64,000 bases of DNA, from the NCBI RefSeq assembly GCF_016433145.1, contig NC_058130.1, forward strand, positions 735,156,692-735,220,691. The letters run 5' to 3'. Origin of the DNA: Gracilinanus agilis. Lineage: Eukaryota. Of this stretch, positions 14,997 through 29,923 are shown one piece after another. Below the pieces are notes generated by a model. It saw nothing but the letters and a program-made list of their open reading frames with translations, did no database searches and had not been told where the DNA came from. The position numbers and the translations under genes were made by a program. Numbering within the stretch: position 1 is the stretch's first letter; every line of letters starts with the position of its first letter.

Positions 14997-15212
14997 AAAC
15001 CTGCGAAGGAGTAGACTGTGGTCCCGGCAAGGTGTGTAAGATGCACGGCGGCCGGCCCCACTGCGCCTGCGCCCCTGACTGCTCCGGACTTTCCATGCAG
15101 CTGCAAGTCTGTGGCTCGGACGGAGTCACCTACAGGGACGAGTGTGAGCTGCGGACCATCAAGTGTCAGGGCCACCCAGACCTGGGCGTCATGTACCAAG
15201 GGCACTGTAAAA
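14997..15212 (+). CDS. FSTL3: FSTL3 exon 3 (follistatin domain 1, [11 protein letters not shown]...[15 protein letters not shown]...YQGHCK)
   Basis: ccccag acceptor, gtgagc donor, 216 nt, 10-Cys follistatin/Kazal pattern. Confidence 0.97.
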
Positions 15213-15776
15213 GTGAGCTCCCGGCGGCGGCCCAGGCTCCTCCTCCCTCCCTTCCTCCACTCTCCCCCTCTGTCAAGGCACCTAGATAAAGGACTGGACT
15301 TGGAGGCAGGAAGATCTGAGTTCGGATCCCGCCTCACACAATTCCCTGTGTCTCCCCGGGCAGGTCCCTTCCCTTCTGCCTCTCCATTTTGTCATCTGCA
15401 AAATGGGGAGAAGAGCGCCGACTCAGAGCGTCCTTTTGAGGATCAAAGGAGATAAAATTTGGAAAGCACTTTGCAGACCTTAAAGTGATACGCAAACGTT
15501 AGCTATCATTATGGCTGCCGTACTCCTCGGTGAACCTTTCCCTGCCCCTCACTGAGCCCCCATCCGCCTTCCTTGGTCTGCCTTCTCCCCGCCGACCTCC
15601 ATCTCTCTCCCTTGGCTGCCATTGCCCTCCCAGAGTTCCCATCCCTCTTGCTTAGCCCCTCCATCTCCCTCGCTGAGCCCCAGCGGCTCCTTACTTAGCT
15701 CTCCATCCCGCCACTGGCCTCCCGTCACCCCGAGGGACCCTCCTCGTGCCTCACTGACCCCCCTCTTCCCCCTCAG

Positions 15777-16004
15777 AGAGCTGCTCCCTTGTGGTGTGTC
15801 CAGGGACTCACACGTGTGTGGTGGACCAGACTGGCAGTGCCCACTGTGTCATCTGCCGCTCTGCCCCCTGCCCTGTGCCCTCCAGCCCCAACCAGCAGCT
15901 GTGCGGCAACAACAACGTCACCTATGCCTCTTCCTGCCACCTTCGGCAGGCCACTTGCTTCCTGGGCAGATCCATTGGTGTGCGGCACTCTGGCAGCTGC
16001 ACAG
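15777..16004 (+). CDS. FSTL3: FSTL3 exon 4 (follistatin domain 2, [12 protein letters not shown]...LCGNNNVTY...[15 protein letters not shown])
   Basis: cctcag acceptor, gtaggt donor, 228 nt, in frame with exon 3. Confidence 0.97.
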
Positions 16005-16195
16005 GTAGGTGCCCTGGCAGGGGCTGGGGAGCAGGGAGGGCATTCATGAATGAATGAATACACGTGTATGGGGCGGCAGTCATTGGCCTCTGAGGGGGAG
16101 ATTCAGCCCTGGTGGGGAAACATGGCCTTCCCCTTGGGGAGACCCTGCGCCCCCCCCTCCCTGAGGCTCCTTTCTCTTCCTGTCTCCCCTTGCAG

Positions 16196-18010: not shown

Positions 18011-18166
18011 CTATCCAGATTTCTGAGTCACACTCTGGATCCAAGTGATGAAGGCAGAGACAAGTGTGTAGACATCTGGAGTTCTGGGGTCTCCACACCA
18101 GGTGCCCGAGAAGGAGACGATGCCCAGGACTTGCTTTCCACAGATCAGGGGCCCTCCAGAGTCCGC
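18011..18166 (-). CDS. PRSS57: PRSS57 (NSP4) exon 5 ([10 protein letters not shown]...[18 protein letters not shown]...*)
   Basis: cag acceptor, catalytic Ser in ADSGGP (Ala193 typical of PRSS57), TAG stop at 18013-18011. Confidence 0.95.
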
Positions 18167-18704
18167 CTGGCAGGGGAAAGGGTCCTGCTGGTTAGAGTGC
18201 TGATCCTGAGGGGTCCCACCTTGGCACCCAGCACTGCTCTGGGTAAGCTCCCCACCATGCCCAGGGCTGTGGGGGAACCTGCTAAATGCTAGTCTCAGCC
18301 CTGTCCCTTATCAATGTCATTCCCTCTCTTTGGGGCTCAGTATCCTCCTTGATAAAATAAGTATGTTGGATTCAGTGATCTCTAAGTTCTATAACTCTCT
18401 GATGCTCTCTCTGATCTATAAGATGGGAGTAATACCTGCCCTGCGCCCTCACGGTATCATAGACCAAGAACTGGGAGCAATCTTAAGAGACAATCTAGTC
18501 TAGTGATTCTTAACCTGGGGCCCAAGGATCTAGTCCAGAGGTTCTTAACCTGGGATTCTCTCCAACAGTCAGTCCTGTGGATAGATTTCAAAGGAATCTG
18601 TGAACTTATATGGGGGAAAATGACTTCTTTATTTTCACTAACCTTTAAAATCTGGTCATTTCCTTCCAATATGATTTTTTTTAAAAATGGAAACTCCAAG
18701 TCCA

Positions 18705-18908
18705 ATTTTAAATTTAAACCTTTACCCTCCGTCTTGGAATCAATACTGGGTATTAGTCCCAAAGCAGAAGAGTGGTAAGGGTAGGCAACGGGGGTCAAGT
18801 GACTTGCCCAGGGTCACACAGCTGGGAAGTGTCTGAGGCCAGATTTGAACCTAGGACCTTCCGTCTCTAGGCCTGGCTCTCAATCCACTGAGCCACACAG
18901 CTGCCCCC
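18705..18908 (-). mobile_element. SINE1_Mdo-like SINE (left arm of an inverted pair)
   Basis: full consensus match; flanking duplication aatatgattttt..aaaaa. Confidence 0.9.
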
Positions 18909-18939
18909 CTAATATGATTTTTTAAAAAATTATTACCTT

Positions 18940-19130
18940 GGGGGGCAGCTGGGTAGCTCAGTGGATTGAGAGTCAGGCCTAGGTTCAAATCTGGCCACAG
19001 ACACTTCCTAGCTGTGTGACCCTGGGCAAGTCACTTGACCCCCATTGCCTAGCCCTTACCACTCTTCTGCTTTGGGACTAATACCCAGTATTGATTCCAA
19101 GACTGAGGGTAAGGGTTTAAATTTAAAATA
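18940..19130 (+). mobile_element. SINE1_Mdo-like SINE (right arm of an inverted pair)
   Basis: consensus match with a short internal deletion; flanking duplication aaaattattacc. Confidence 0.9.
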
Positions 19131-19851
19131 TATATATATATATGTATGTATACATGTATATATAAAATAAAATAAAAATAAAAATTATTACCCTGAGAGA
19201 GATCCATAGACTTCACCAGATTGCCAAAGTGCTTTAGCTTTAACACTAAAAAGGTTACTTCTATCAAGTCCAATTGCCTTATTTTATAGAGGAGGAAAAT
19301 GAGAGTCAACTAGGCTAGGCATGTGGCATTCTCCTGTTTTGGGGTTCCACACACACTCTCTCTTCTGTTTCTATCTCTTCCACCTTTTACTTTGTCTCTG
19401 CCTGTTTTTTCCACATCAGGACCAAAGCCTGAGTGATTAGCTTTAGAGAGTCCTGAGCAAATAAGAAAGGGGAGAGATCGGAAGTCCAGGTAGCAAATGA
19501 ATCTTCAGGCAGGGCCATCTATATGGAAGTGGAAAGGTCCCAGGAGGTGGGAAGCCCAGGATGGGTCCCTTTCTGAGCCCTAGCTTGCCCGGGTAGAATC
19601 AAAGAATCAAATCCTGCCTAGGATGCTAATGTCAGTAAATCACTTTACCTCCCCCGACCTCAGTTTCCTCCTATGTAAAAATGAAGACATTTGGGTTAGT
19701 TCATCTGAGAGCTTCCACCAGGCTGTAGCTCTCTGATTCTATGGTTCATAAGGGATGATCGAGCAAAAACTCCCTGGACTAAGCCTTCTTTTCCATGGCC
19801 TGCAGGGATAGTTGGACCTAGGGACCATTAGAGACACGGCGTGTCACTCAC

Positions 19852-20112
19852 CGTGCAGAAGCCTATGCGCTTCCATTTCTCACCAATGGCACAAAGCATC
19901 TTGCTGCTGATTTGGCCTTTCCAGGAGCTGTTACAGGTCATCCGATCCAGCACACTCACGTCCGCCTCCATTAAGCCTGGTGATGGGTGTCCGAAGTCAG
20001 ACAGAGAGCCCCAGCCTGACACCAGGCACCGTGTGCCATGCTTGGGGTCCACACCTTCCCCGGGCAGCTTCACTAGTCCCACTGAGGAGCTGAGGGTAGC
20101 CTCGCGATCTAG
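19852..20112 (-). CDS. PRSS57: PRSS57 exon 4 (LDREATL...CLVSGWG...GLMEA...CNSSWKG...GFCT)
   Basis: 261 nt, phase 0/0, cag acceptor and gtgagt donor; lies within ORF 19828..20184. Confidence 0.95.
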
Positions 20113-20943
20113 CTGGGGAGCAGAGAACGGTAGCTGTGGATCAGGAAGCATCCTTCGGCCATCATAGTGCCTGCCACTGACCAACAGGAAAAGTCTCCTG
20201 AATTCTCATCTAAATATGTCCTCTTGCAACAATAGCTGGCATTTATTCAGGGCTGTCATATTTGAAAAGAGCTTCAGTTGAGGACATTATCCCAAGTGAC
20301 CCCCTACGACAGACTCTAAGGGTATCATTATCCCTATTTGATTCAAGCATCGTGGATAGACCCCTTGTTGAGATCCTAGGGGAGGGCACGAAGAAGAATT
20401 GCTGAAGCAGGCAAGGAGGTGTTATGAGAAGCATTTTTGGAGGGAATATCCACATTGACGAGATCACAGATAGGAAATCAAGGAGGCAAAAGATTAACTT
20501 GACTGATCTCCCTGCGGGGGTGCCGATGAGAGAGGTAGGGGTTGGAAGGTGTGTAGAATCTGAGTCCAAATCTTTGCTTACACTAGGTTCATTCTTCTTC
20601 TGCTTAGAACAAGCTTCATCCCCTTACAGATCCTGCCTCTGCTGAGAGGTATTACTTAAGAAGCCTCTCTGTGCTAAGCAACCCCTGTTCCTCTAGCCGT
20701 GTGCTTTGGGACCCTAAGAAAGTCTCTTCCCTTCTCTGGGGTTCACCTTCCCTGTAGTCAAACCAAAGGGAATTGGACTCTAATCTCTAATGCCTGTCCG
20801 TCTTAGGTTTGATGGTGTTCTGGGTCCCTTCTGGCCCCGACAGTGTGTGTGTGTGTGTGTGTGTGTGTGTCTGACAACAACTCTGGACACCAGGAAGGAG
20901 AAGGGGAAAGGACACTGAGAAGATCTCCAGCACTTTAGCTTAC

Positions 20944-21088
20944 CTTCAGCAGACAAAGATCATTTTGATGCGTCTGAGGATCATAGTCTGGGTGCAGGAT
21001 AGATTGCTGGATGGTGAAAGTTTGTTGAGTGGGCTCAGTGTTGTTGGTGGAGTGGGCACCCAGCACTATCAGGCTAAGGCTGGTGTTT
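20944..21088 (-). CDS. PRSS57: PRSS57 exon 3 (IVLGAH...EPTQQTF...HPDY...NDLCLLK)
   Basis: 145 nt, catalytic Asp102 motif, cag acceptor and gtaagc donor. Confidence 0.95.
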
Positions 21089-21942
21089 CTGTGTTGGGAA
21101 AGAAATGTGACCTTCCAACCTGCTCTCCTCGGAGAAGGCCACTGGAGGACCAAGAGCAGGGAGGTTCGAATCTTTCATCTACCTATAAAACACTTGGGAG
21201 ATAGGTCAGATTTGAACCTTGGCTTGAGCAAGTCCCTTCCTCTCTCTGGACTTCCGTTATTCCTTCTGTAAAATGAAAGGTTGGACTGCCCTCTAGCTTT
21301 GGATCTTATGAATATATAGAGATGAAGGAGAAGTTGAGGGAGAAAAGATGGTGGAATAAACCCTGGGCTAAAGACTCAGGATTTTGAGTCCTAGTACTGC
21401 CATTGATGCAAATATTTCCCCTCTCTGGGGCTCAATTTTTCCGTCTTTAAAATGGGAACTTAATTCAGTGGTCTCTAGAATCTCTTTTAATTCTGACAAT
21501 ATATGAGTCTAAAAGGCAGTTAGGTATAGCAAGGGACAAATCTCTGAACCCCAGAAGACAGAACAGGTTCAAGATCAGGAGATTCTGATGGCCTTTGGTT
21601 CAGGAAAAATTAGAAAGGGGTGAAATGGGGGCAGGTAGGTGGTTCAGTAGATAAATAACCAGGCCTGGGGACCAGAAGTCCTGGGTTCAAGTCTGACCTT
21701 TGACCCTTCCCAAATGGATGACCCTGGACAAGTCACTCAGTCACCCTTTGGCTAGCTCTTTCTGTTCTGCCTTGGATCCAATACATAGTATTGATTCTAA
21801 GATGAAAGGTAAAGGTTTTTAAATTAAAAAAATTTTTTTTTAAATAGAAAAAAGAAAGGGATATAGGTGAAAGCCCTGGGGAGATAGCTGGATCCCTCTT
21901 GGTTGGGGTCTGGGAGCTAGAGCAAGGAGGGTTCCCTCTTAC

Positions 21943-22096
21943 TTGTTGAAGAAGCAGTGGGCTGCCGTCATCACCCACTGGGCCATGAAAAGCACTCCTC
22001 CACAGTGATGTTGGCCCATAAAGCGCACGGAAGCCATATAGGGCCTGGAGTGTGGCTTTACCTCTCGGCCACCAATAATTCGACCACTCTTGCAGC
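21943..22096 (-). CDS. PRSS57: PRSS57 exon 2 (..[23 protein letters not shown]...TAAHC)
   Basis: 154 nt, IIGG mature N-terminus, catalytic His57, gtaaga donor. Confidence 0.95.
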
Positions 22097-22375
22097 CTGG
22101 GAGCCCACAACAGCCAAGGAAAAAGGTAAGGATACCTGTCAGAAGCCAGCCTGGGGGACACAGAGGGTTGCAGAATCAGGATTCTTTGTAAAGGACCAAG
22201 GAAGGTAACAGAGAGAGAAAGAGAAACTTGACCTTTTGTTTCCCAGCCTTTGGTGAAGGAAGAGAGAGCAGGAGGGTAAAAGGTGACAGGAGAGAATTAG
22301 GAGCAGACACTTATTAGGTGACTAAGGCAGAGATGGGTATGGAGAGGGAAACAGGGTTGGAGAAAGAGATGAGGG

Positions 22376-22670
22376 GATGAGAATGGAGATTGGGGTCAGG
22401 GAGAATGGTGGAAATGAGGTCAGATACAAGGATGAGGGAAAGAGGAAAGGATGGGGATGGAGATGGAGATTGGGGTCAGGAAGCATGATGGGAATGAGGC
22501 CAGAAACAAGGATGAGGGAAAGAGGAAAGGAGGGGATGGAGATGGAGATTGGGGTCAGGGAGCATGATGGGAATGAGGCCAGATACAAGGATGAGGGAAA
22601 GAGAGAGGAAAGGATGGGGATGGGGATGGGGATTGGGGTCAGGGAGCATGACGGAAATGGGGATAAGGAG
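22376..22670. repeat. About 80-bp purine-rich minisatellite, roughly 3.5 copies, in PRSS57 intron 1
   Basis: attggggtcagg recurs at 22389, 22469, 22548 and 22632. Confidence 0.9.
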
Positions 22671-22898
22671 AGATGAGCATGGTTACAAGGAAAGTGATGA
22701 GGATGGGAAAGAAGCAGGAATAGAGATAGGATCAGAGTTGACAGAAAGTCAGTCATAAGGAAGAGCTTGGAGCTATGGAGAGGGGAAAAGAAATAAGGAA
22801 GTAGAGATAAAGGGAAGGGAGTCAGAGAGGGGTGAAGGGAAGGACAGAAGGGTGCTCCTGTCCCCAGGTTCCCAAACTCCTGGGAGCCTCTTGCTTAC

Positions 22899-22962
22899 GC
22901 TGGGCGTCCATGGGAACCAGTAGACTCAGTGGCAGCATTCTTGAGCTCCAGCCTGGCCCCAT
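22899..22962 (-). CDS. PRSS57: PRSS57 exon 1 (MGPGWSSRMLPLSLLVPMDAQ)
   Basis: ATG, 64 nt, phase-1 gtaagc donor in frame with exon 2; the leader is only moderately hydrophobic. Confidence 0.7.
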
Positions 22963-24258: not shown

Positions 24259-24411
24259 TCAATAATGTTGCAGGACGTCATAGATCCAGGGTATGAAGGT
24301 GGAGACACGAGCATAGACATCAGGGAAGCGGGGGTGCCCACAGAGGGGCGTTGAGAAGGACACCACACCTTGAAGCCTCCCTTGGCAGATGAGTGGTCCC
24401 CCGGAGTCTCC
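24259..24411 (-). CDS. PRSS57-like protease exon 5 ([50 protein letters not shown])
   Basis: cag acceptor, catalytic Ser195 in GDSGGP, TGA stop. Confidence 0.93.
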
Positions 24412-25244
24412 CTGCCAAGCAAGAAGGGACAGTATGAGGGCAGAAGAAGACTAAGTAAATATTAAAAGGCCACTGGGGAGAGATGGNNNNNNNNNNNNNN
24501 NNNNNNNNNNNNNNNNNNNNNNNNNNNNNNNNNNNNNNNNNNNNNNNNNNNNNNNNNNNNNNNNNNNNNNNNNNNNNNNNNNNNNNNNNNNNNNNNNNNN
24601 NNNNNNNNNNNNNNNNNNNNGAGAGGGAGAGACAGAGAGATAGACATAGAGAGAGAGGGAGAAAGAGACAAAGAGAGGGAGAGGAAGAGATGGAGGGGGA
24701 GGAAGACAGGAAGAGAGAGAGAGAAAGAAAAAGAGGGAGAGAAAGGGAAAGAGAGGTGGGGAGGGAGAGAGAGGGNNNNNNNNNNNNNNNNNNNNNNNNN
24801 NNNNNNNNNNNNNNNNNNNNNNNNNNNNNNNNNNNNNNNNNNNNNNNNNNNNNNNNNNNNNNNNNNNNNNNNNNNNNNNNNNNNNNNNNNNNNNNNNNNN
24901 NNNATAGACATAGAGAGAGAGGGAGAGACAGAGAGTCAGAGACAGGGAGAGGAGGGGGGAGAGAGAGAGGCAGAGAGACAGAGAGAAAAACCTAAGGAAA
25001 GAGATGGACACCCTACCTATTGGGGACTACTAGGCCTACCAGTGTGTCCCTCAAGGATCTTCTAGGCTAACAGCTGACTTCTAAGAAGGTGGGAGACAAG
25101 GACAGAGAAAGACACAGGGAAGGTGGAGAAACTGGGAGCCAGATGAGGGAAGGGCCTTGCCCCAGATTATTCTCTGATGAGGGAGGGGGCAGAATTGGGG
25201 CTAGAATGCAATTCTCCCAGCTCCCTTTTCCTCACAATCCTCAC

Positions 25245-25508
25245 CCCACAGACGCCCCGGAACTGGCCTCTCACAGAGCCCAAAGCGCAGACCATGTCCT
25301 GGTTGATGACTCCATTCCAGGAGCTGTTGCAGGCCTGCTTGGTTACCACCACAACAGACGCCTCCATGAGTACCTTTGCGGGATTATTCAGGCCTGTGGT
25401 GTCCCCCCAGCCACACACGTGGCACTGAGTCCCTGGGAAGACTGCTGTGTTCCATCTGGGAAGGCTGACCAGCCTCACTGACCTCGTGAGCAAAGCGGTG
25501 CCATTGAG
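25245..25508 (-). CDS. PRSS57-like protease exon 4 (LNGTALL...CHVCGWG...LMEA...CNSSWNG...RGVCG)
   Basis: 264 nt, phase 0/0, cag acceptor and gtgagg donor; lies within ORF 25167..25544. Confidence 0.93.
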
Positions 25509-25559
25509 CTGCAGGGAACAGAAGAGGCAGGAAGAGTTAAACATGGGGACAGAGATGGT

Positions 25560-25672
25560 GACACCTGAGAGATAGAGAGAGGGGAGGGAGAGGGGGATAG
25601 AGGGAGACAGAGAGAAAGGAGGAAGAAAGGGAGAGAAGGGAGGTAGAAGGAGGAGAGAAAGAGAAACAGGGA

Positions 25673-25737
<65 letters not shown>

Positions 25738-25820
25738 TGATAGACAAGGGATAGAGAAAGGCTTAGAGAGTAACAGAGAAAAGAGAAATGATAAGAGACA
25801 AAAACAAAGACAAGGAAAGA
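25560..25820. repeat. (GA)n / purine-rich tract
   Basis: directly visible; similar tracts at 24620-25010, 29045-29340 and 53100-53147. Confidence 0.9.
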
Positions 25821-25969: not shown

Positions 25970-26114
25970 CTTGAGCAGCTGTAGGTCACTGGTATCGGCC
26001 TGGGAATTATAGAGCGGATAAGGGACAGCCTGAAGGATCCCAAACACCTGCTGGGTTGACTCTGGGGTCAGCAGGGAGTGAGCACCCAGAACTATTTTGA
26101 AGTCAGTTAGGTTC
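25970..26114 (-). CDS. PRSS57-like protease exon 3 (NLTDFKIVLGAHSLLTPESTQQVFGI...SDLQLLK)
   Basis: 145 nt (same as PRSS57 exon 3), Asp102, cag acceptor and gtgagc donor. Confidence 0.93.
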
Positions 26115-26584: not shown

Positions 26585-26738
26585 TTGGAGACCTCACAGT
26601 GGGCAGCTGTGAGCACCCACTGAGGCCGGATGAGGGCCCCCCCGCAGAAGTGCTCACCCTCGTACTGGATGGAGACTGCATATGGGTAGGAGTGGGGTCT
26701 GGCTTCTTGACCCCCCACGATTTGGCCTTGGTGGGCTC
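26585..26738 (-). CDS. PRSS57-like protease exon 2 ([19 protein letters not shown]...[18 protein letters not shown])
   Basis: 154 nt (same as PRSS57 exon 2), IVGG N-terminus, His57, gtgagt donor. Confidence 0.93.
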
Positions 26739-29700
26739 CTGGGGACAGAAACGAGTGTCTAAGCCTTCTTCATGGAGTTCCACATCCCAGATCTGGGGGA
26801 TATGCTGTCTCCAGAAGGCACTTTCATTCTCAGGGCACTCCTGAGTAGAGTCAGTGTTATCAAAGGATCTTGGCGAGAGTCCACTAGGATCTGTCAGGGT
26901 ACTCTGGGTGGGGAGGAAGGAAGGAAGGCTCGAATTGTCAAGATGACCATCTTCCAGAGTAATCTAGCCTTCAAGGTCTCAGGAAAAATACCCTGAGGTC
27001 TCAAATCAGACTCCACTGTCTTCTCAGACACAGGAGCAAGAAAAGAGTGACAGAGACAGAAGACACTGTACTGCTCAAGAAAATTCTATGATTCCCTATT
27101 GCGTCTAAGATAAAAGACCAACTCATCTCTAGAATTGAGATTCGGACTCTTTAAAAAAAAATCCTTTCCTTCCTTTCTATCTTAGTAAGAAAACAAATTT
27201 TTTTTAAACCCTTACCTTTTGTCTTAGAATCAATCCTCTGACCTCAGACACTTCCTAGCTGGGTGACCCTGGACAAGTCACTTGACCTCCATTGCCTAGC
27301 CCTGACCACTCTTCTGCCTTAGAACCTCTTACCTTCTTTCTGTCTTAGAACCAATACTAAGTATTAGTTCCAAGACAGAAGAGTGGTCAGGACTAGGCAA
27401 TGGGGGTCAAGTGACTTGCCCAGGGTCAACCAGCTAGGCAGTGTCTGAGGCCAGCTTTGAACCCAGGACCTCCCGTCTCTGGGCCTGGCTCTCCATCCAC
27501 CGAGGCACTTAACTGCCCCCTTTCTTTCTATCTTAGTAACAATTTTAAGACAGAAGGATGAGGGCTAGGCAAACAGGGGTAAGTTATTTGTTCAGGGTCA
27601 CATAACTAGGAAGTATCTGAGACCAAATTTGAATCCGGGTCCTCCCAACTCCAAGCCTGGCTCTCTGTCCATTGTGCCACCTAGCTATTAGCTGCCCTGA
27701 CAATCTGACTCGAACCCGTCTTCCTAGAGGGATCCCACGTTATTTCCCATTCACATGCTCCGTGTTGTATCTCTGCCCCTGGGGAGGTCTCCATCTTCCC
27801 CTGTGCTTTTTTGACCCTTCTTGCTTGGCAGGATTCTGTCTGGGAGATTCTCCCTCTTCGCCCCCGTCCAGTAGGACTCCTTCCGTGTTCTTAATGATCT
27901 CTCGGACCCCAGAAACTATTTTGTATTCACTCTTTATGTTTGTCTATGTAGGTGGTGTTCCTTGAGGGCAGAGAGGGTTTGGGTTTTGTCTTGGCATCTC
28001 TAGTAGCCCCGGCACATAGTAGGCCCTCCAAAATGTTTGTGGAATAGCAGTGAATTTTATTTGCTGTTACAACTAACTCCCCATCTCGCCTTATGTCCCT
28101 TGCACTAGATGCACACACACACCCTACGTGCATGTGGTTGCTTTGGCCGGATGACACATTTTCAGGATGACTCCGGAGGAGAACAAATATAGAACAAAAA
28201 TAAGAGGCACTCCAGAGACAGAGACTGAAACAGAGTAGAGGCAAAGATGGCCAAGGACTGGGTTTGCCACTCATTCAGCCATTCAGGAAGTACCTACTAT
28301 GTGCCAGGCACTTGGTTAACCAGCAGGGATACCGAGAAAGGCAAAAGACAGCCCCTGCCCTCATGGAGCTCACAGTCCAATGAAGGAGGCCACATGCAAA
28401 CAGCTATGGACAAATACACTATGTAGGAGGTAGCTGGGTGGCCCAGTGGATAGAGAGTCAGGCCTGGAGTTGGGAGGACCTGAGTTCAAATCTGGCCTCA
28501 GATACTTCCTAGCTATGTGCCCCTGGGTAAGTCACTTAACCCCCATTGCCTAGCTGTTACTCTTCTGCCTTGGAACTAATACTTAGTATTGATTCTAAGG
28601 CAGAAGGTAAAGGGGTTTAAAAAAAAAAAAGCAATTTATAGGGTAGATTGGAGATACTCATCAGAGGGAAGGCATTAGCATTAAGGAGGACCGCCAAAAA
28701 TTTGCTGTAGAAGGTGGGACTTGAAGGAAGCCAGAGATGCCAAAAGGCAGAGACAAGGAGAGAATGTTTCTGGCAGGAGGGATAGTCAATGAAAATGTCT
28801 GGACAGGCAGAGAGGCAGGGACAGAGATACTTTAACCCCAGAAAAGGGAGACCAGGAGATGGATTCCTGAGAAGAAGTTTGTCCTAGGATANNNNNNNNN
28901 NNNNNNNNNNNNNNNNNNNNNNNNNNNNNNNNNNNNNNNNNNNNNNNNNNNNNNNNNNNNNNNNNNNNNNNNNNNNNNNNNNNNNNNNNNNNNNNNNNNN
29001 NNNNNNNNNNNNNNNNNNNNNNNNNNNNNNNNNNNNNNNNNNNNCAGACAGACAGAGGAGAGAGACAGACAGACAGACAGAGACAAAGAGACAGACAGAG
29101 GAGGTACAGACAGACAGACAGAGGAGAGAGATAGACAGAGACAAATGGACACACAGAGGAGAGAGAGAGACAGAGACAAACACAGACAGAGAGACAGAGA
29201 CAAAGAGAGACACAGACAGACAGAGACAAACACAGACAACAGAGAGAGGAGAGACAGAGGAGAGGGAGAGACAGAGAGAGGAGGGAGAGAAAAGGAGGGA
29301 GAGGGAAAGAGAGAAGGAGAGAGAGAGGTGGGGGAAAGTATAGTAAGGATTTGTGCCTCAGAGCCTGAGAGGTGTTTCCTAGCCCAGTGACCCTGGGCAA
29401 GTCACTTAATCCCATTGCCTAGCCCTTACCACTCTTTGGCCTTAGAATTAATATTGATTCTAAGAGGGAAGGTAAGGGTTCGAGATGGGGGAGCCTGAGG
29501 GCTGGCTGGTCCCCACAAGCATCAAACACACTCCAATTCCAGCTCACTAAAGGCCTGAGGAGCAAAGAGAGACCTCTTTGGGGAGAACTTCCCCAATTTT
29601 AGGATTGCAATAAGGCAATAGGAACTCCTCTTTCTGTTTTGAAAGCTGCTTGGTTTCCCCTATCTGCTAAGCCTCCTAGTTGCTCTCTAACTTCTCAGAT

Positions 29701-29856: not shown

Positions 29857-29923
29857 CTGAGGAGGTCAGCTGGCCCAGGGTCGCCACCCAGGACAGGAGC
29901 GTAGAGATCCCGGGGGCCCTCAT
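29857..29923 (-). CDS. PRSS57-like protease exon 1 (signal peptide MRAPGISTLLSWVATLGQLTSSG)
   Basis: gcaccATG Kozak context, 67 nt, phase-1 gtaatg donor in frame with exon 2, TATA-like box upstream. Confidence 0.8.

Follow-up and report, generated by a model that had tools for sequence, protein, structure and literature searches.

A second PRSS57-type serine protease gene beside PRSS57/NSP4 in Gracilinanus agilis: an old mammalian sister lineage with a changed S1 pocket

The question raised by this locus is what the second of its two adjacent serine protease genes is, how old it is, and whether it still cleaves after Arg. The analyzed stretch (64,000 nucleotides of Gracilinanus agilis, contig NC_058130.1, positions 735,156,692 to 735,220,691, here referred to as the window) carries the gene for PRSS57, also called NSP4, together with a paralog whose S1 pocket residues differ from those of NSP4. 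NSP4 has been described as a single, 400-million-year-old and uniquely Arg-specific protease with pocket residues “conserved in all orthologues”. The paralog is a member of an old and conserved sister lineage of PRSS57/NSP4 (here clade A; the mammalian PRSS57 proteins form clade B), and on balance it seems somewhat probable that it has retained Arg cleavage with altered kinetics.

By six-frame reading and inspection of the splice sites, we found a five-exon gene on the minus strand (29923-24259) encoding a trypsin-fold protease of 260 residues. All of its introns run from GT to AG, with phases 1, 2, 0 and 0, and a script comparison showed that the concatenated exons are identical over 260 residues to the annotated protein P0001, “serine protease 57-like” of Gracilinanus agilis. 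The parts of the gene are the following, with catalytic and pocket residues in chymotrypsin numbering.

29857..29923, minus strand: exon 1, with start codon and signal peptide, ending in phase 1; 100% tblastn match to P0001 residues 1-23.
26585..26738, minus strand: exon 2, with the pro-peptide end AHQGQ, the mature N-terminus IVGG (I16 at 26721-26719) and H57 (26601-26599).
25970..26114, minus strand: exon 3, with D102 (25987-25985) within SDLQLLK.
25245..25508, minus strand: exon 4, whose 3' end is G189-V190-C191-G192 (25256-25245); its top PDB match is human NSP4.
25256-25254, 25253-25251, 25250-25248 and 25247-25245, minus strand: exon 4 codons of G189, V190, C191 and G192, respectively.
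24412..25244, minus strand: intron 4, phase 0, GTGAGG...TTGGCAG, with GA-rich simple repeats.
24259..24411, minus strand: exon 5, with G193-D194-S195, S214-F215-S216-T217, P225-D226, the clade-typical C-terminus ...DVLQHY and the stop codon (24261-24259).
24411-24409, 24408-24406 and 24405-24403, minus strand: exon 5 codons of G193, D194 and S195.
24360-24358, 24357-24355, 24354-24352 and 24351-24349, minus strand: exon 5 codons of S214, F215, S216 and T217.
24324-24322 and 24321-24319, minus strand: exon 5 codons of P225 and D226.

The first-pass annotation of this DNA covered 24259-25330, that is, exon 5, intron 4 and just the last 86 nucleotides of exon 4. It had read the paralog as G189-V190-C191-G192-G193-D194-S195, S214-F-S216-T217 and P225-D226, and the PRSS57 neighbor as G189-F190-C-T192-A193, S216-G217 and D226; each of these residues is present by codon in the paralog, and those of the neighbor are found in its motifs GFCT/ADSGGP, SFSG and PDV. 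The chymotrypsin numbering, originally assigned by eye, also holds. In the exon-by-exon search of solved structures, exons 4 and 5 both matched human NSP4 first, and exon 5 aligned without gaps to human NSP4 residues 184-230. Moreover, the mature paralog aligned with human NSP4 (PDB 4q7x family) over residues 1-230, interrupted by just two one-residue indels, which fall near residue 147 and in the 186 loop, and by none between C191 and the C-terminus; its active-site segment stands opposite NSP4 RGFCSADSGGPLVC. An AlphaFold model of the paralog (predicted local distance difference test, pLDDT, 88.7; predicted template-modeling score 0.89) had S1A proteases for all of its top Foldseek matches, NSP4 being the first, and superposed on 4q7y/4q7x with a template-modeling (TM) score of 0.95 and a root-mean-square deviation (rmsd) of 1.5 A. 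The ungapped exon 5, the full-length alignment and the superposition together therefore establish the residue numbers used here. The lowest-confidence regions of the model are the 185-195 and 215-224 loops (block mean pLDDT 62-77), and since the S1 loops are the least confident part, we set the predicted structure aside as a test of Asp226 exposure.

Sequence scores place the protein in the same family. Against solved relatives, NSP4 scored 216 bits, factor D and granzyme A at most 174, granzyme M 165, elastase 164 and proteinase 3 (PR3) about 161; exon 2 on its own matched granzyme K/M, elastase and NSP4 by phmmer against PDB at E values of 1e-13 to 1e-16. Granzyme M identity, suggested by the UniRef name of the donkey protein, was rejected on these scores (165 bits versus 216 for NSP4), and the opossum GZMM is a separate gene elsewhere in the locus (bioRxiv 10.1101/2022.06.02.494303). 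The NCBIfam library returned a model for neither the paralog nor PRSS57, as expected of a prokaryote-oriented collection.

The residues needed by an S1A protease are in place. The paralog has the triad H57, D102 and S195, whose columns are invariant in an alignment of 57 sequences, and for activation it has IVGG after a signal/pro segment of 28 residues, D194, G193 and the GDSGGP motif. From these residues, it is predicted to be a catalytically competent protease of the secreted or granule type. Its mature chain contains nine Cys, eight of which fall at the four conserved disulfide pairs 42-58, 136-201, 168-182 and 191-220 when the alignment is read by eye. The ninth is marsupial-specific and presumably unpaired; it lies in exon 4 in C-x-x-C-G-W-G, three residues past Cys136 (C-H-V-C before GWG, listed at 25142-25131), at a site where placental clade-A members have Thr, Met or Leu. 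Canonical PRSS57 has an odd Cys of its own, in D-I/L-C-L-L after Asp102.

We compared the pocket states at positions 189-193 / 214-217 / 225-227 in an alignment of about 220 family members, which gave the following patterns.

Fish and amphibians: GFCSG / SFSG / PDV.
Lizards: GFCSG / SFNG / PDV.
Birds: GVC(A/T)G / SFSG / PDI.
Alligator and turtle: GVCSG (189-193).
Mammalian PRSS57: GFC(S/T)A / SFSG / PDV.
Clade A: GVC(G/A)G / SFS(S/T/F/A) / PDV.

Among the 14 clade-A sequences scored, V190 was found in 13, G193 in all 14 and Ser217 in 12, Thr217 being private to the didelphids (Gracilinanus, Monodelphis); position 192 has no hydroxyl in any of them, the residue being G or A. Only nine positions cleanly split clade A from clade B, and three of these (190, 193 and 217) belong to the S1/oxyanion region, while a rough hand calculation gives an expectation below one for such sites among the approximately 16 pocket and oxyanion positions. 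With the outgroup states as reference, clade B has a single derived residue, Ala for Gly at 193, and clade A has three: Val for Phe at 190, Gly or Ala for Ser at 192, and Ser for Gly at 217. Fish, amphibians and lizards have F190-S192-G193, S or N216, G217 and D226, and therefore the NSP4-type pocket predates the duplication; likewise, because the outgroups have G193, this residue was retained in the paralog, and it is mammalian NSP4 that changed, to A193. Birds, crocodilians and turtles with V (or I) at 190 and lizards with F190 fall in one sauropsid clade (support 100/98), so V190 arose independently there.

This polarity alters what the locus had first been taken to mean. It had been proposed that the paralog lost F190 and the 192 hydroxyl and restored G193: the two losses are real and clade-wide, but G193 is ancestral and was never lost. 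The further suggestion, that the locus is a snapshot of how the NSP4 mode arose, fails, as the outgroups already have the NSP4-type pocket and the paralog is the derived copy. The locus is thus best read as a record of departure from the NSP4-type pocket and not of its origin. In the dasyurid clade-A proteins (Antechinus P0005, Sarcophilus P0222 and Sminthopsis P0223), residue 190 is Phe (GFCGG), which sets them apart from the rest of clade A; either a reversion or gene conversion from the adjacent PRSS57 could account for it.

How widely is this gene shared, and how old is it? Relatives were found by full-length word searches (a word search with exon 4 only matched just the window's own protein). 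The search with P0001 recovered orthologs in six other marsupials with 72-77% identity, followed by a second tier of 57-62% in armadillo, tamandua, sloth, tenrec, pangolin, donkey, zebra and echidna, and clusters at 90% identity added Monodelphis, Sarcophilus (Tasmanian devil), Sminthopsis (dunnart), koala, platypus, Tenrec, Manis pentadactyla and Equus caballus. Clade A thus spans monotremes, at least 12 marsupials, xenarthrans, tenrecs, pangolins and equids. A search seeded with canonical PRSS57 found a separate canonical gene in the same placental and marsupial species, mostly on the same contig. No clade-A copy from primates or rodents appeared among the 15 closest relatives in the P0001 search, which covered annotated proteins only.

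We inferred a maximum-likelihood tree of 59 sequences with ray-finned fish as the outgroup, leaving out ELANE, PRTN3, CFD and GZMM. Clade A comprises 15 sequences with support of 100/99, and its branching order, echidna first and then marsupials plus placentals, mirrors the species tree; mammalian PRSS57 forms clade B (100/100), and in the free tree clade A lies outside B, sauropsids and amphibians (87/84). A recent or local marsupial duplicate was rejected, given a well-supported clade that runs across monotremes, marsupials and placentals. In the window itself, paralog and PRSS57 share 48.9% identity over the mature domain, which likewise indicates an old duplication. These sequences date the tandem duplication next to PRSS57 to at least the crown mammals, and it may be older. 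Membership of the PRSS57 family is seen in the closest relatives, which are PRSS57 proteins, in the locus between FSTL3 and PALM, and in G189/S216/D226, present in all clade-A members. The paralog is not the ortholog of human PRSS57: it belongs to the separate 100/99 clade, and the neighboring protein P0197 is the true ortholog.

The neighboring genes in the window are the following.

18011..22938, minus strand: canonical PRSS57/NSP4 ortholog (clade B), protein P0197, with exons 22938-22899, 22150-21943, 21088-20944, 20112-19852 and 18166-18011.
15032..16057, plus strand: FSTL3 follistatin/Kazal-type exons, whose open reading frame translations are rich in the follistatin-module Cys pattern.

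PRSS57 lies about 2 kb downstream of the paralog on the same strand, with the motifs GFCT/ADSGGP, VSFSG and PDVY, and P0197 falls within the mammalian PRSS57 clade with support of 100/100. FSTL3 adjoins the 3' side of PRSS57, and FST_N/Kazal Pfam matches occur at the same place in Dasypus and Dromiciops. The gene order is PALM-A-PRSS57-FSTL3 in Dasypus and A-PRSS57-FSTL3 in Dromiciops, with which the window agrees. In Vombatus ursinus, the “serine protease 57” entry P0230 (XP_027716167.1, 528 aa) fuses the paralog and PRSS57 by read-through; GVCGGDSGGP and GFCTADSGGP both occur in it, so that one 90% cluster mixes the two genes.

The monotremes deserve separate mention, since the annotated “serine protease 57” proteins of echidna and platypus are clade-A members. 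The echidna annotation has the A gene alone; an isolated fragment resembling exon 3, of B type (...HEDDLC, L001:16003-16155), lies about 2 kb downstream of that gene, with other PRSS57 exons not detected in the 10 kb examined. Monotremes may therefore retain only the paralog and a remnant of the true PRSS57. The echidna and platypus proteins (P0010 and P0238) have His in place of Cys201, after GDSGGPLF, and their mature chains contain 8 and 7 Cys, respectively, compared with 9 in marsupials; from these sequences, the 136-201 disulfide appears to have been lost in monotreme clade A.

Three assembly gaps touch the paralog, and they bring in the reading that the gene is an artefact or is dying, with the exons on either side of the gapped intron drawn from different copies, or with the whole being an unexpressed pseudogene. 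The N runs 24487-24620 and 24776-24903 both lie within intron 4, flanked by GA-rich tandem repeats, and make up 262 of its 833 nucleotides as written; the third gap, 28892-29044, is in intron 1. GA/CT-rich and short-period repeat tracts (22320-22760, 24450-25010, 25540-25780 and 28890-29400) occur in and around the paralog introns, as well as between and upstream of both protease genes, and all three gaps lie within such tracts. Besides the two gaps in intron 4 and the one in intron 1, the Equus caballus UniProt model with D194N speaks for this reading. Against it stands an intact frame with consensus splice sites: intron 4 has the donor GTGAGG and the acceptor CTTCTTGCTTGGCAG (TTGGCAG) in phase 0, and PRSS57 has an intron at the identical site (GFCT/ADSGGP). 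Furthermore, the protein is colinear with 260-residue orthologs of independent assemblies and is 93.5% identical to that of Monodelphis (79/88 residues in exon 4 and 50/50 in exon 5), and signatures private to clade A, such as the ...DVLQHY end, are found in both exon 4 and exon 5. Splice sites, shared intron position, colinear orthologs and private signatures thus make coding continuity independent of the gaps. Intron 4 is also about 560-600 nucleotides long in Dromiciops and echidna, and therefore no coding sequence is concealed in the gaps.

Selection and transcription also argue against a decaying gene. Between Gracilinanus and Dromiciops, the ratio of nonsynonymous to synonymous substitution rates (dN/dS) is 0.36 for clade A and 0.30 for PRSS57, which indicates purifying selection on the paralog. 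A Logan contig of 1269 nucleotides (run SRR22936866) is intron-less and joins the equid clade-A exons 2-5 in one open frame with the complete mature protein; the gene is therefore transcribed and spliced in at least one species. Taken together, these data make an artefact or pseudogene highly improbable. The equid contig has in-frame stops and no recognizable signal-peptide exon 5' of the mature coding region (L003:1-268), which hints that this transcript either kept intron 1 or uses a different 5' exon. The horse model itself (P0241, UniRef A0A3Q2KP81) reads GVCVGNSGGP (D194N, V192) and TATHC, unlike donkey, zebra and the equid transcript contig with an intact GVCAGDSGGP; the gene may have been inactivated specifically in the horse, or the difference may stem from the assembly or from a variant.

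What, then, would such a protease cleave? In the 2014 structure paper on NSP4, Phe190 and Ser216 are said to plug the pocket. The NSP4 pocket is occluded, and P1 Arg is held at the surface by hydrogen bonds, so that the enzyme cuts after Arg, citrulline and methyl-Arg and not after Lys (PMC12274431). Ser192 and Ser216 are named as the new hydrogen-bond donors (PMC7914634), and a docking model involves Ser216, the Gly217 backbone and a cation-pi contact with Phe190 (PMC4783772). From this Arg-holding set (F190/S192/S216/G217) the paralog keeps only S216, the others being V190, G192 and T217. The specificity triplet 189/216/226 of PRSS57 is G/S/D (Akula et al. 2015, PMC4646688).

The ancestral S1 pocket was of the NSP4 type, with G189, F190, S192, G193, S216, G217 and D226. 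Clade A has kept the G189/S216/D226 triplet and the ancestral G193 and has changed by F190V, S192G (A in some species) and G217S (T in didelphids). Val190 together with Ser216 would form a platform between the NSP4 and the elastase (V190/V216/D226) types, and P1 Arg might rest on this shallow platform with Asp226 shielded beneath it, in the manner of avian NSP4. The absent 192 side chain, the extra 217 hydroxyl and a normal oxyanion hole would then change the rate, the inhibitor sensitivity or the secondary preferences. Birds provide the precedent: a bird NSP4 is reported to favor unmodified Arg, as do its human and mouse counterparts (PMC7914634, Fig. 4 legend), and all recovered bird PRSS57 proteins have V/I190, A or T192, and G193. 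We therefore consider it likeliest, with a chance of about one half, that the preference for Arg persists and that the kinetics or the inhibitor profile have changed.

Several points weigh against this proposal. The bird result is unpublished data in a review legend, with the species not named (PMC7914634), and Ser192, which is absent from every clade-A member, is said to be conserved in all NSP4 homologs and to help hold P1 Arg (PMC7914634). Val is much smaller than Phe, and the pocket may not be occluded. Retained specificity is not to be assumed either, as fish PRSS57 duplicates diverged to Ala-, Tyr- and Met-specific enzymes (PMC10855939). As for the age of the lineage, an approximately unbiased test did not reject A and B as sisters, that is, a mammal-only duplication (p = 0.24).

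Two other pocket readings have to be weighed with the same residues. The pocket may have re-opened, so that Val190 and a bare 192 let Lys or Arg insert in the canonical “down” mode and pair with Asp226, comparable to rat trypsin D189G/G226D or to the acidic residue 226 of cathepsin G and duodenase. V190 is conserved through clade A except in the dasyurids, more than 160 million years alongside NSP4 lead one to expect some functional difference, and granzyme M, with Ser216, accepts long unbranched P1 residues, all of which count for it. The trypsin D189G/G226D mutant also keeps basic specificity (PMC7914634). However, Ser216 is kept, the side chain gained at 217 narrows the pocket entrance, and elastase and PR3, with V/I190 and D226, leave their Asp shielded (PMC7914634, PMC4646688); a preference for Arg is reported for birds, which combine V190 and G193 with the lack of Ser192, from the assay that was also applied to human and mouse NSP4, and the structure model is unreliable at the S1 loops. 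We consider this re-opening unlikely. Similarly improbable is a shift towards an elastase, in which V190 over a shielded Asp226 makes a shallow pocket for Val, Ala, Thr and Ser, and hence a second enzyme of the elastase/PR3 type. Neutrophil elastase shares G189/V190/D226, the elastase and PR3 triplets being GVD/GID (PMC4646688), these two proteases are the next-best structural matches after NSP4, and one catfish enzyme derived from PRSS57 is an elastase specific for Ala (PMC10855939), but residue 216 is Ser and not Val, elastase and PR3 score about 161-164 bits, well under the 216 of NSP4, and the avian V190 precedent points to Arg.

A bolder version, which we regard as possible but doubtful, would make clade A a functionally distinct granule protease, a “fifth NSP lineage” present in the mammalian ancestor and lost in primates and rodents, with a P1 specificity unlike that of NSP4 and with the platypus “PRSS57” being the paralog. 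If so, clade A may be the sole intact PRSS57-type gene in monotremes, and the V190/G192/S217 pocket could confer, for example, an Asp226-dependent Lys/Arg or a dual basic/aliphatic preference.

Mammals inherited two PRSS57-type genes, the second of which differs systematically at 190, 192 and 217 and keeps a normal G193, and the evolutionary polarity is corrected in that A193 becomes an oddity of mammalian NSP4. The clade-A proteins are already auto-annotated as “serine protease 57(-like)”, and wherever database entries carry this name in monotremes, armadillo, tenrec and pangolin, they represent the paralog and not NSP4. Surveys of the met-ase locus show just one PRSS57 for opossum and for platypus (PMC4646688), a 2024 paper gives only one gene in this part of the human locus (PMC10855939), and our literature search found no paper on a second mammalian PRSS57-type gene. 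The family offers a natural mutant series for “up” Arg binding: F190/S192/G217 (NSP4), V190/A192/G217 (birds), V190/G192/S217 (clade A) and F190/G192/S217 (dasyurid clade A). In practice the finding carries modest weight, since the search of annotated proteins yielded no copy from human or mouse.

Among known systems, human and mouse NSP4 (PRSS57; PDB 4Q7X-4Q80) are the closest in sequence. They share with the paralog the fold (TM 0.95), the exon phases, the locus, G189/S216/D226, F215 and the length of the 217-225 loop. Identity to human NSP4 is approximately 45%, and the differences are V190 versus F190, G192 versus S/T192, G193 versus A193 and T/S217 versus G217; in addition, the C-terminus of the paralog is short (...VLQHY) without the Pro-rich tail, and the paralog belongs to a separate clade with the true ortholog 2 kb away. 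The PRSS57 proteins of birds, crocodilians and turtles have V (or I)190, G193, S216 and D226 like the paralog, but they keep G217 and usually have Ile at 227. Neutrophil elastase and proteinase 3 differ from it by V216 instead of Ser, by a side chain at 192 (Phe in elastase) instead of Gly, and by much lower sequence scores. They resemble it in G189, V/I190, D226, the shallow shielded pocket and the same mammalian chromosomal region (PMC4646688, PMC7914634). The PRSS57-derived duplicates of fish, namely gar granzyme G and catfish granzyme-like I/II, are also tandem duplicates of the met-ase locus with diverged P1 specificity, but they are independent, fish-specific expansions, and no mammalian PRSS57 duplicate is described alongside them (PMC10855939).

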